Shown here: in pieces, positions 1,733 to 23,012 of the stretch | How positions within the stretch are numbered: position 1 is the stretch's first letter | Layout of the letters: the number at the start of each line of letters is the position of its first letter | NCBI RefSeq assembly: GCF_052425735.1 | Contig: NC_135760.1 | Coordinates: 10,726,001-10,790,000, forward strand | Length of the DNA: 64,000 bases | Reading direction: 5' to 3' | Source: Oculina patagonica | Lineage: Eukaryota | The notes under the pieces: generated by a model | The model's database searches: none | What the model saw: the letters and a program-made list of their open reading frames with translations, nothing else | Told to the model about the DNA's origin: nothing | Position numbers and translations under genes: made by a program

Positions 1733-4700
1733 CTACTCCGAGAACCAATCGAAACTTTGTTGAAACTTGGCATAATAATAATCACCAAATCTGAAGGGCA
1801 ATTTTAGCAGGAACTCAGGGGTGTAGTTCAGGTCCCTCGTCAGGTCGCTGTCCAATGGCTCGATGACGCACTTGGGATTGGGTCCGTAAAAGAATGGGGC
1901 TGAATATCTGTGCTTGTCTGGGGAGTTTCTGACACGATGGATACTTGCGCGGTAAAGGCCCTTGGTCCAGGCTTCCAATGGGTCCCCAACATTAACAACG
2001 AAGGTTCCTGTGAAAAGAAATAATGCGGCCTGTAAGACAATCATTGGTTTTAGAAGTTTTTATATCCTTCATAAATTATGATCTTTTCGATGTCACGTCC
2101 CTGATACAAGGAAAACTCGCCTTTTCCTCTCCTCCCCCCCCCCCCCCGGGTTCAAAATGAAGTTACCTGGAATGGGTGGTACATCGATCCATTCTCCTTC
2201 TGAGATCTGCACTTCCAATCCCCCGACATCATCCTGTAAGACCATTGTAAGCACTTCGTGGTCTGTATGTGGCCCCACCCCCCACGAGCTGTCTTTACTG
2301 GGGTGGGCAGGGTAAGACCACATGGCCATCCACGCACTTGGATTAGAAAACATGTCGTCAAAATGGTCTTTCTTTAGCTGTAGACCCATTGCTATAGCAC
2401 GCATCAAAGACAATCTGTAAATGAATGTTTTGCATTCAAAATAGTGTCTAGAGTTTTTCTAGTAGTAGGCGCCGCGGCCTTATGGTTAGGGCGCTGGACT
2501 CCGGATCGAGCGGTCTGAGCCCCAACCGGGGTCATTAAAACACTTATTAACTCTGGGGTACAAAAGGGTACCGGCTAATTAAACGCTGGAAAGTAGCTCT
2601 GCGATTAAAAAGCATCCCATCCAGAGGAAAGGAGAAATACTCCTAGTCGCTTAAGAAGAAATCGGCGTTATGTGCCAGCTGTTTCGGCCACAAAACTCGA
2701 ACGCGGACTTTACATTCCCACCAGATTCGAAATTTGTCTGATCCCAAAAGTAGTAACCTCCTCCTCCCCCAGGGGGTACTCACCCTCTCCTCCCTCCCCC
2801 TTCCTCCTTTATACACAATACTGGACAGGATATGGTTTTGAGGAGTTTACTCTGAAAAAGTGCGTTCAAATCTGTTCATTTGGCTCTCAAACAGGGCATC
2901 GTTTTTCGGGAATCGAATTGGGAGATAACGGTCTTAGTCTGGTATATAAGGAAAAGACTAACATCTTCGAACGAAATTTGCAGCAGATATAGTTTCAGCT
3001 CTCCTATCACTGGCTACATTAAAAGAAGAAAACTACAATATTTAAATCTTCTCGCCAAATGAAACGTAATTTTAATGGTCTCATGTTGCAGTTATTTTTT
3101 CATATAAAAAAAAAACAGTTATTATTATAAAACTTCCCTGCACTGGCGGCAATTAGCTGTCACAGTTCATTATGAACGCAAGGTTTCCTTTTTACTTTTC
3201 AATCAATAAAGGGCAAAACCAACTTTCCCGTCTTCACGCAGACATTCCCACACGAAAATTTTTTTTCAACTGTATGGCAACAACAAGTTCAAAATACAAG
3301 TACAGTCTTGGGAACAAGTGCAAGTTGATGGCGACATCACTAATTCTCTGACTGAGCCCGCGAATTTCGTCCCAGAAGTTGCTAAGCAACATGACGTATT
3401 TTTACGCGCGATTGCTTTCGGAGTACTCGTGAGCGCTCGCGCTAGTTTTTGATTGAATGAAATTATTCGGAAATTCTTCGAGTGCTTCAACGAAGATTTG
3501 CCAAAACTGGCACTTATTCCCCCGACTGAAGTATCTTGATAACAACACACCCAACAGTCTTCATCTGATCCCTGTATTGCTTTACAGCATTAGCAAAGTT
3601 TGGCAGGTCTCTCTCATCCGGGTATTGATTCGGACCAACCATTGGCGTACCAGAAATCACATCCGGGTCATCAGAACTGACATCTGGCCCAAAGTAGATA
3701 CCTTCCTTTACATCTACTTTGCCTGCCGTCTTCTCTGATCCTGTAGGCCAATTAAAAAAGGAAATCTTTTAGGACCTAGATATCTCTTTTAATTCTCTTT
3801 ACCCATGTAGCCTGATTATTTTTAAGTCCTTTATAAGGGAGTAACAAAAGTGTCAAATCTTGAAGTGGTTAGCGCAAAAAGGTAACAAGTAATACCTCGA
3901 GGTTTTAATCGTCTGTTAGTTAGCGATCGCAAGCGAAGCCCAAGTCAACTATCAAAATCAAAAGAAAATCGAAAGCTAGCAGTCTATCGATAAAACTGCT
4001 TTATTAACGTTTTTGTTAATTTATCTAGCCATATTGCACGGAAACGTACTCGCGCTCCGAAAGACTTCTATCGACCAATATTTGGTGCCTGTGTCTTCAT
4101 CATCATCATCATCACCGGTCCTTTTCGCGCCATCGGACGCATAAGGCCTCGTTATGACAAAATTGTGAGTTTGTCAATGCTCTCGGATAACAGTTAAAAT
4201 GAGATACGTGTAGAGGGATATTATTATGGCTTCCCGGCCATCCTCACTCTTCAGAATTACATTAAAATTGACTAGTGCCTCAGTAGTCTGCGCTGTGCAT
4301 CCGGCGAGAATGCTAACGTTTTCAAGTCACACACACTAGCGACGAAGCCACAGGCTTTTCAATTTCTCGCCTTCTCATCTTTCTCTACGCCCCCTTCACG
4401 CCGCCGTGTTTGCTCGCGAGCGACCGAGTACGAGGGAGGCTCGCGCGTGTGACTCAAACATGAACATGCTCGCAAGTTCCCGGAGGTAATTACAGTAGAG
4501 TTGCGCATTTTTAAATTTTTATTTTTTTTTTAACTTCCTGATCGCCTGCTTGGCAATCCATATAACCTAGAGTGAGAATTTAAGCTGTAACGTTTATTTG
4601 CTAAACAAACCTCTCTGTATATATCCTCTGTATGCTTTGCTATTCCTAATGCTTAGAGCAATTTTCTTCTCAAAAGGCATCTCAAAGAAGCGTCTTGCAG

Positions 4701-20429: not shown

Positions 20430-23012
20430 ATAGAAATCAGGGCCGGGTTGTTCGAAAGCTGATTAACACTAACCCAGGATTAAAAGTTGATCGAGGGTTC
20501 AATTTCTCGTGTGTAAAAGTGTTTTTATTGCTTATGATTTGTGGAGTTTGAGATTAGTCGACTTCAAATTAAACTGGACGACAGAGAATATTAACAGAAA
20601 AACCTCACTGAACGTTGAAAAACTGATATCAAAATGCACGCTAATCCTGGATTAGCTTAATCGTGGTTTGAACAACCCGGCCCAGGGCCGTTACCAGACC
20701 TTTGCATTGGCATAGACGAGGCAAAATCCTCCTAGGAGGTTCTGGGGCATGCCCTCCAGGAAATTAAATTTGGAGAACTAGAAGCTCTGATACTCTTTTT
20801 TAACATTTTTTATAAGGTAATTCTTGAAAAAAAATCAATCTTGTTTAACTGGTATTGTTTTTCTTCTCAACTAAACATATTTCGTTTTAAATTTTCCCTT
20901 TAGTTAAAATCAAGACGAGGCAAGTGCCTCGTCAAACTCGAGCCGTTAGGCGAGTGGTTTCACTACAGTGTTAAGGACATTTTGTGGCGTCATTTTTATG
21001 TCTTAAAATAGTGTAGACCATGGAAAAGTTCCGTCAAATTGTTCTCATGCAATAACGCGGAAAATTGGCTGGTGAATAAGATAGAAAATGTGTGCGAAAT
21101 CGCGCGCATTTATGACAGCTCGTAAGATCGCATATTTTTCACCTGAAGCCGACGAATGTATTGGAAATTTCGCCCTAAATCTTCACGCAGACTTTTTACA
21201 TCTCGCCAAATTTTAGATTTTAGAAAAGTCTTAAGTTTTCTATAGTACGATTGTAGCTCATGACCTTGAAAATTTGTTTAGAGACAAGGCATCAGTATAC
21301 CTTTTCAACATTTTGCAGCTAAACTGACGTGAGCTTTGTTCTGTCGTTATTTAGGCATGCAATGATGAAAGGTCTAGCTCTTGGCCTACAATTGAACGAC
21401 GATTACTTCCAGGACAAATTCAACCCACCCTTCCCCTTGTTGGCTTTGTGGCACTACCCACCAGTCCCTGCAGAGTCAGACTCTTGGGGGGTGGGACCTC
21501 ACACGGATTATGGTGTGCTGACGCTACTAATGCAGGATGACGTGGGAGGACTGCAGGTCGAGACAAGCACTGGGGACTGGATCGACGTTCCGCCCATTCC
21601 AGGTAGAAACCTGAGTGGATTTCTTTATCGTGAAATCTCTTCTTATTCAACTCAGTCCGTAATTACATTTATATTTACATTTACTTGACTTCTGTTCTAA
21701 CAGGAGATAACGTTTTTAATGTCCCAGGAAATGCAAACACACTTGAGCCTTTTAACGAGGATGGAAGGTCCTTCCAAATATCGATTGCCGTGACAGAAAT
21801 TGATTGTTTTCCTCCATTAGGACCCATTAGTTTGTACTCTAGCAGTTTTTAGAGAAGATATCTAAACTTCGAGCCAGGATCCGAGCCAGGATTCGAGCCA
21901 GGATCCGAGCGTTGTAGGATCAGAGCCAGGATTCAGGTTAGGATTAGGGTTAGGGTTAGGATTAAGATCCTAGCTCGAATCCTTGCTCGGATCCTGGCTT
22001 TATTATTAGTTTATCTCGTTTTTAGTGATTCCGTATATATCTTGTGTTATATCTATGCATTTTCCTAGCACATTGTAACATATTTACAAATACTTTTGGC
22101 AGGAGGTCTTAATTCCATTAAATGTAAGGCCTAACAAATTTAGCAAAGGTTCGGCACTCTCCATTTCTTTACCAAATATTTCAGCAAAAAGTATCAATCT
22201 AACAATATGCCTTTTATACTTGGACATTTTTATGTCTTGTAAACACTGTCTCAAGCTAAAATACTATACTGATTATAATAGTAGTAGTAGTTAAGTTTAT
22301 TTCAACACGGTAAAATCATCAGGACTTAACCTGATTGAACTTAAGTTGTTGAATGGAAAGGTAATGCCTTAATTTCTATGTGAGACAAACGAGAAAAAAC
22401 GAGTTGTAATAGAAATACTCCTAGTCTCTTCGTGCTGATGGATTGCTAGGCTCGAAAATAGACTTTACCTACCTTACCTACACTACACTAGTCACGTTAC
22501 CTGCACTGGTCACGCGACAAGCGTCACTGTAAGCTTAAAAGTTTCATCCTGGCTCAAATCCTAGCATAACTGACTCTCTCAAATATTAAAAATATGAAAT
22601 CACTGTCTTGGGCGTGTCCGTACGTTTCAATAGATGTTTTTAATTGAGTAATTAACTGTTAAGACCGAAGAGGTTCAACTAATGACTTGTAGATACTATT
22701 AGTCAAATGCTTTTTTTCCCTTCGTCCTGCCTAGGTACTTTTGTGGTAAACATTGGTGACGTGGTGGAGGCCTGGACCGAGGGTCAGTTCCGTGCCACAA
22801 TGCATCGAGTTAAAAACTCAACATCAAAGCATCGAATCTCGGCACCATTCTTTTTCCAGCCAGGACTTGATTGCGTCATCAAGCCCCTTGATGACGTCAT
22901 AGCCACTGAGACCACTGGTAAAACTTCAAGCACAAGGCTGGCGCTTCATAAGCCTTTTAAGTTTGGAGAATATGTGTTGAATAAGTTTGAAAAATCGTAT
23001 GGTAAGAGTTAG
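15755..23012 (+). CDS. IPNS/PcbC-like Fe(II)/2-oxoglutarate dioxygenase, copy B, 321 aa
   Basis: Exons 15755-15794, 17469-17678, 18805-18994, 21355-21602, 22735-23012 (966 nt). MEIPLIDISPLVN..., WGVGPHTDYGVLTLLMQDDVGGLQV, HRVKN, RIS. The 190- and 248-nt exons match copy A in length. Confidence 0.95.
16596..16843. mobile_element. MITE with 6-bp TSD and internal GCGAGCA repeats
   Basis: aggggtatcaaatggtc / gaccattcatgacccct; TSD accgga at 16590-16595 and 16844-16849. Confidence 0.75.
18023..18695. mobile_element. TA-flanked MITE carrying an internal LINE-tail insertion
   Basis: Ends ttattgttacttattttcgcggga / tcccgagaaaattagtaacaataaggta; same family as 25871-26085. Confidence 0.65.
18134..18197 (+). 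repeat. (GATT)n microsatellite, probable LINE 3' tail
   Basis: About 16 perfect units directly after aataaagtc. Confidence 0.85.
19200..19496. mobile_element. MITE
   Basis: tagagcagttttcaattgagtgtcg / cgacactcaagggaaaactgctcta. Confidence 0.8.
20324..20427. repeat. ~104-bp near-perfect hairpin of a dispersed repeat family
   Basis: aacaattagactac...caactcggctgcgcctcgttg...gtagtctaattgtt; relatives at 24011-24070 and 47978-48093. Confidence 0.8.
20438..20685. mobile_element. MITE
   Basis: gggccgggttgttcgaaag...ccaggatta / taatcctgg...tttgaacaacccggccc. Confidence 0.75.
21852..22017. mobile_element. Small inverted-repeat element with a telomere-like (TTAGGG) core
   Basis: 12-bp gagccaggatcc units on the left, their reverse complements on the right, centre ggttaggattagggttagggttaggatt; flanked by direct repeat gttttta(g). 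Confidence 0.7.

Follow-up and report, generated by a model that had tools for sequence, protein, structure and literature searches.

We analysed a 64,000-nucleotide stretch of the genome of the coral Oculina patagonica (G000:C3:10,726,001-10,790,000; source assembly of 529 Mb), hereafter called the window, with the focus on three neighbouring genes: two genes for oxygenases that use Fe(II) and 2-oxoglutarate (2OG), named A and B, and a transporter gene, T, that lies between them. A first-pass annotation, made from the sequence without database searches, had placed these genes here and proposed that they form a "modify and package" module for an amino-acid-derived metabolite. Pfam searches on the open reading frames (ORFs) of the window confirmed all three genes where they had been placed. 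The minus-strand ORFs 4594-4806, 2093-2413 and 1733-2044 and the plus-strand ORFs 17462-17713, 21329-21688 and 22707-23012 carry DIOX_N or 2OG-FeII_Oxy domains, and the plus-strand ORF 12775-14040 matches Aa_trans over profile positions 2-407 of 410 (E 1.2e-48). Complete gene models were built in three steps: a tblastx comparison of the A locus with the B locus revealed a fourth exon common to both, the full-length coral homologue P0061 and the Nematostella protein P0084 provided a short first coding exon for A and for B, and enumeration of frame-keeping GT/AG pairs left a single consistent model per gene. The main features are as follows.

5979-5946, 4832-4611, 3740-3551, 2414-2167 and 2007-1733, minus strand: gene A, Fe(II)/2OG oxygenase with five coding exons, 322 codons (Pfam, junctions, translation)
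5980-12774, no strand: A-T intergenic region, 6.8 kb (blastn against the closest relative examined, L003; DNA searches in the own genome)
12775-14040, plus strand: gene T, intronless Aa_trans (AAAP family) transporter, 421 amino acids (Pfam, homologues)
15755-15794, 17469-17678, 18805-18994, 21355-21602 and 22735-23012, plus strand: gene B, Fe(II)/2OG oxygenase with five coding exons, 321 amino acids, ATG start (Pfam, splice models, orthologues that share the WD40 gene described below)

The geometry proposed for the locus is borne out by these models. The outer limits that had been set at 1733 and 23012 are the exact stop codons of A and B, A on the minus strand indeed faces away from the plus-strand genes T and B, and the 1.7 kb that had been given between the transporter and B amounts to 1,715 bp from the T stop codon to the B ATG. 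A common upstream region had also been claimed for A and T. These divergent genes do share one intergenic region, but the 6.8 kb that separate the first coding exon of A from the T ATG argue against a compact bidirectional promoter. Several blocks of this spacer are unique and alignable to L003 by blastn (6258-6561, 8320-8728, 8967-9422, 9785-10433 and 10731-11038). The spacer also harbours a short interspersed repeat of ~160 bp at 8810-8967, flanked by unique blocks, for which 858 first-look candidates exist genome-wide; the 39 that were scored are 84-92% identical.

Both A and B carry an N-terminal DIOX_N and a C-terminal 2OG-FeII_Oxy domain on their exons, above the Pfam gathering score; a search with NCBIfam models on T and the A exons gave no match. 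In the alignment with homologues, A shows the motifs HTD, IHRV and RYS and B the motifs HTD, MHRV and RIS, with the iron triad HxD...H and the 2OG-binding motif RxS intact in both. The two proteins are 52% identical to each other, and their genes have a five-exon structure in common with identical exon phases. They are 41-44% identical to a Nematostella protein and 32-41% to bacterial members, relatives that go by the database names "probable iron/ascorbate oxidoreductase DDB_G0283291" (Nematostella) and "isopenicillin N synthase family oxygenase" (bacteria). Among solved structures, exons 3 and 4 of A find their best matches in 9OVH (E 4.5e-20 and 2e-11) and 6JYV, and below them stand plant and fungal 2OG oxygenases, EFE, ACC oxidase and H6H. 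True isopenicillin N synthase (IPNS), the ACV cyclase, is not among the 43 and 31 solved matches that these two exons obtained at E ≤ 1e-3. Judged by these matches, "IPNS-like" is correct for A and B as a family label only: the family-level assignment made by the first-pass annotation stands, and close kinship with true IPNS falls away, the solved relatives being of the EFE and PaIPNS type. 6JYV, deposited under the title "probable iron/ascorbate oxidoreductase", is presumably the "IPNS-family" protein of P. aeruginosa (PaIPNS), and we know of no substrate for any animal member of this oxygenase family. 9OVH is a reconstructed ancestor of ethylene-forming enzyme, EFE (PMC12329707).

A is transcribed and correctly spliced, as RNA-type Logan contigs from four runs and three organisms have all four of its introns removed at the modelled junctions (2006/2166, 2414/3551, 3739/4610 and 4832/5946). 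Exon 1 of A has a tandem NAGNAG acceptor at window positions 4829-4832 (minus strand), where 4832 is used in two organisms and 4829, one alanine codon apart, in one. RNA-contig depth is thousands-fold, with many loose ends, at 3304-3631 inside A intron 2 beside exon 2; the likeliest source of this signal is an interspersed repeat with high expression, and not A itself. The start codon of A differs between the window and L003.

5977-5981, minus strand: position of the A start codon, GTG (alignment with the L003 orthologue)

The L003 orthologue has ATG at this position (MPLIDISPLLKG) and the window has GTG. An out-of-frame ATG (5981-5979) two bases upstream of the GTG opens a three-codon ORF, MCP, that ends with TAA, and no in-frame ATG for A exists between the upstream stop codon at 6048 and 5979. 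For the RNA contigs that span the start no difference from GTG is listed, an absent row being no proof.

The transporter T has its best vertebrate match found in cod VIAAT (28% identity, E 3.4e-35), with PAT1 reaching only E 4e-6; its sole solved match is the SLC36 protein PAT1 (PDB 9V3T). A Montipora relative that is 73% identical and belongs to a sister paralog clade bears the NCBI name "vesicular inhibitory amino acid transporter-like". Since the own genome holds ~28 further intronless Aa_trans relatives at 29-46% identity, T is, on homology, a member of a cnidarian expansion and probably not a one-to-one VIAAT orthologue; to our knowledge, these expanded VIAAT-like carriers of cnidarians are uncharacterised. 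In the tree, T forms a clade with P0002, P0003, P0004 and P0007 next to a sister clade of 28 members, and two assemblies have a copy in each. Three differing sequences of the P0004 cluster in the T clade (at least 90% identity) are all recorded on a contig size of 975,340 bp (locus L004), which suggests a lineage-specific local amplification of the transporter gene in that coral. The exact matches of T, L001 and L002, are colinear with the genome and thus carry no information on splicing or expression of T.

T starts ~10 residues ahead of its Aa_trans domain, compared with ~40 extra N-terminal residues in its relatives and ~120 in cod VIAAT. What is absent from T is an acidic tail with an MG-x-x-x-S/T start that is found in every relative aligned and that we take to resemble an N-myristoylation signal. 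Against the L003 copy, T is ~190 bp shorter (window 12757-12790 versus L003 9898-10121), the lost stretch being this tail and the new ATG lying at 12775. The designation of T as VIAAT-like is sound at the level of the family, where Aa_trans and the cod VIAAT match agree.

The ratio of non-synonymous to synonymous substitution (dN/dS) against L003 is 0.13 for T (synonymous divergence, dS, 0.42), and the corresponding values of A and B are 0.20 and 0.31; against further relatives, B gives 0.10-0.15. By these values, A, T and B are all under purifying selection. This bears on whether the neighbourhood might be decaying in this species, with A transcribed but becoming a pseudogene through start loss, T truncated at its N-terminus and a former relationship no longer functional. 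Such a decay would be in line with the GTG in place of the L003 ATG and the overlapping out-of-frame ATG with its three-codon ORF, with the want of an in-frame upstream ATG for A, with the loss from T of the MGxxxS/T-type tail present in all relatives, and with the absence from this genome of the sister-clade transporter copy of other assemblies. We nevertheless regard it as quite improbable: apart from its start, A has an uninterrupted frame of 322 codons that includes every catalytic motif, it is correctly spliced in the RNA contigs of three organisms, dN/dS is low, and T keeps its whole Aa_trans domain. Moreover, GUG is able to initiate translation, at low efficiency, and the GTG may be an assembly error.

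The own genome contains nine oxygenase copies, namely A, B, six on C1 and one on C5. Those on C1 form a tandem array (G000:C1:22,965,000-23,017,000; L015-L017 and L019-L021), one on the minus and five on the plus strand, with the same multi-exon layout; the C5 copy (C5:16,068,474-16,070,172) has two coding exons only. Over 60 kb around the C1 array and 20 kb around the C5 copy, no T-like match was found. In the oxygenase tree, the clades of A, of B and of the C1 array form a polytomy with the C5 copy and the Nematostella gene, A and B not being resolved as sisters. On this topology, A and B are old lineages and not a recent local duplicate.

We then compared the locus with its counterparts in relatives. 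From A exon 2 through B exon 3, the window runs colinear with a 1.3-Mb contig (L003; dS 0.3-0.4), T (90% amino acid identity) and several unique intergenic blocks included; judged by this colinearity, the A-T-B arrangement predates the split from the L003 species. Further B orthologues, in L008, L011 and L012 (dS 0.94, 0.75 and 2.4), were recognised by a common gene downstream of B.

28000-33600, minus strand: WD40-repeat gene downstream of B, synteny anchor for the B orthologues in L008, L011 and L012 (Pfam, blastn colinearity, neighbour tables)

In L011 and L014, the latter being the upstream extension of the former, the three unique anchors 10279-10435, 10915-10948 and 10983-11166 lie colinear with the window, as does B exon 0 (15748-15802). 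No trace of T was seen in the 3.3 kb between these anchors and B exon 0, and A was not found in the next 9.2 kb. T is likewise absent from 5.8 kb upstream of B exon 0 in L008, where transposon sequence is present, and L012 covers only ~1 kb upstream of B exon 0, which makes both of them weak evidence for an absence of T. None of the four T-like copies L004-L007 has an oxygenase within 10 kb. The flanks of L004 matched little but repeats in the own genome, and the one 2.2-kb match, shared by C4:60.36 Mb and a second contig, is insufficient to place that locus. On the available colinear segments, the A-T-B layout is common only to the window genome and L003, the closest relative examined, and the linkage is patchy. 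The first-pass annotation had itself named absence of the linkage in related genera as evidence that would tell against a module, and the outcome is divided: the linkage is kept in L003, T is missing in L011/L014, and L004-L007 have no oxygenase within 10 kb.

The L014 comparison also bears on the possibility that A and B are a simple local inverted duplicate and that T arrived later between them as a retrocopy. The identical exon phases of A and B, the lack of introns in T and the absence of T in L014 would all fit such a history, which we nonetheless consider highly improbable. With A and B only 52% identical and not resolved as sisters, any local duplication would have to be very old. As all ~28 members of the T family are intronless, intron loss is uninformative for a copying event at T. 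Finally, no insertion boundaries, poly(A) remnant or target-site duplication can be defined at T against L014, because the entire 4.6 kb between the anchors is unalignable, and the comparison thus speaks for neither a retrocopy origin nor a deletion.

Altogether, we favour, at a probability of about 0.68, a reading in which these three genes of a scleractinian coral function independently in an ordinary neighbourhood, without a demonstrated operon-like module. The patchy linkage, the membership of the genes in two multi-copy families, the C1 array without a transporter and the lack of a compact promoter carry this reading. A and B are anciently diverged paralogues of a cytosolic Fe(II)/2-oxoglutarate oxygenase family. 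Their most likely activity is hydroxylation of a small molecule, coupled to the conversion of 2OG to succinate and CO2, and T most likely transports amino acids, or compounds closely derived from them, through a membrane in a proton-coupled manner. The three genes stand side by side in this lineage and in the nearest relative through either a gain of T between the oxygenases or its loss from that place in a relative. Nothing found requires that the product of A or B be the cargo of T. Metabolic clusters are recognised by several non-homologous pathway genes that lie adjacent, and here two families only are seen, the oxygenase twice and the transporter once; past A-T-B, the next genes are the WD40 gene and, at a distance of 20 kb, a carrier of the MFS Sugar_tr type. 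For the proposed "modify and package" module, we thus find nothing beyond adjacency, with T missing in L011/L014 and the C1 array having no such transporter. Adjacency alone is weak evidence at this locus: the layout is restricted to one lineage, and all three genes come from mobile, multi-copy families.

Several observations pull in the opposite direction. The A-T-B adjacency has been kept over a dS of ~0.4 with all three genes constrained. An A-type exon-3 ORF (P0273, 64% identical to A and 53% identical to B) and, from outside the T clade and its sister clade, a T-like ORF (P0041) are both recorded on a 1,498,666-bp contig of a distant coral, a co-occurrence at contig level only, for which our own rough estimate of the chance is ~0.3-0.6%; being unlikely by chance, it hints at an older A-T linkage. 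One run, X15, holds about a quarter of the words sampled from the T stretch together with spliced A contigs. Furthermore, the substrates of EFE and of Din11/AtHA6H are arginine or homoarginine (PMC12329707), and since these nearest characterised relatives act on such compounds, an amino-acid substrate is plausible for A and B.

These points, along with the purifying selection on A, T and B and the nearest solved relatives being the EFE ancestor and PaIPNS-type enzymes, would suit a true mini-cluster of two families. In it, A and/or B would oxidise an amino acid or a derivative, for example an arginine-like one, T would export the product or load it into a vesicle or symbiosome, and selection for co-inheritance or co-regulation would keep the genes linked. 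The same-contig hint and the arginine/homoarginine chemistry of the nearest characterised relatives (PMC12329707) keep this explanation alive. We still judge it unlikely, as L011/L014 lack T at the orthologous position, the T-like copies examined elsewhere are not neighboured by an oxygenase, no transporter accompanies the larger oxygenase array on C1, and with two gene families only, no third pathway gene is seen. The 6.8-kb spacer between A and T likewise offers no compact shared promoter, and in this genome A lacks a canonical ATG and T its N-terminal tail. Were an enzyme-transporter unit proven, it would give a direct handle on a coral metabolite that may serve in signalling or in exchange between host and symbiont. 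Less probable again is the proposal that A and T are an ancient linked pair in stony corals, a minimal "oxidise-and-transport" unit for an amino-acid-derived metabolite to which B was recruited secondarily; it draws on their adjacency here and in L003 and on the contig shared in a distant lineage and, if true, would make the pair a two-family metabolic cluster of a new type for animals. A separate figure, the ~1% chance that an Aa_trans gene adjoins an oxygenase locus, was given no weight, since this pairing had been selected after the fact among many possible enzyme-transporter adjacencies.

We thus retain the ordinary neighbourhood of three independent genes as our interpretation of the locus. 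In the literature, we found no paper on the oxygenase-transporter pair formed by A/B and T. The MFS carrier mentioned above is a minus-strand multi-exon gene at 41000-47200, ~20 kb downstream of B and past the WD40-repeat gene; its ORF 43253-43543 matches Pfam Sugar_tr (PF00083, E 1.9e-07), and by appearance it is SLC22-like. Rfam at gathering thresholds gave no match in the entire window.

Comparison with known systems places the three genes as follows. A and B match the Fe(II)/2OG "IPNS family" (PF14226 and PF03171; 6JYV, 9OVH, DDB_G0283291) in their two-domain architecture, their length of ~320 amino acids and the HxD...H and RxS motifs. IPNS proper, in contrast, cyclises ACV without using 2OG, and no close kinship to solved IPNS chains was seen for the exons searched. 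T has the full-length Aa_trans domain (PF01490) of SLC32/VIAAT (VGAT), and VIAAT is its nearest vertebrate subfamily, but it has no counterpart to the long cytosolic N-terminal domain of SLC32/VIAAT. Biosynthetic clusters of anthozoans include the octocoral terpene clusters and the mycosporine-like amino acid gene set. In these, as in A-T-B, enzyme and transporter genes of different families are adjacent in a cnidarian genome; yet they comprise several non-homologous enzymes of one demonstrated pathway and are kept across genera, whereas A-T-B comprises two families with patchy conservation.

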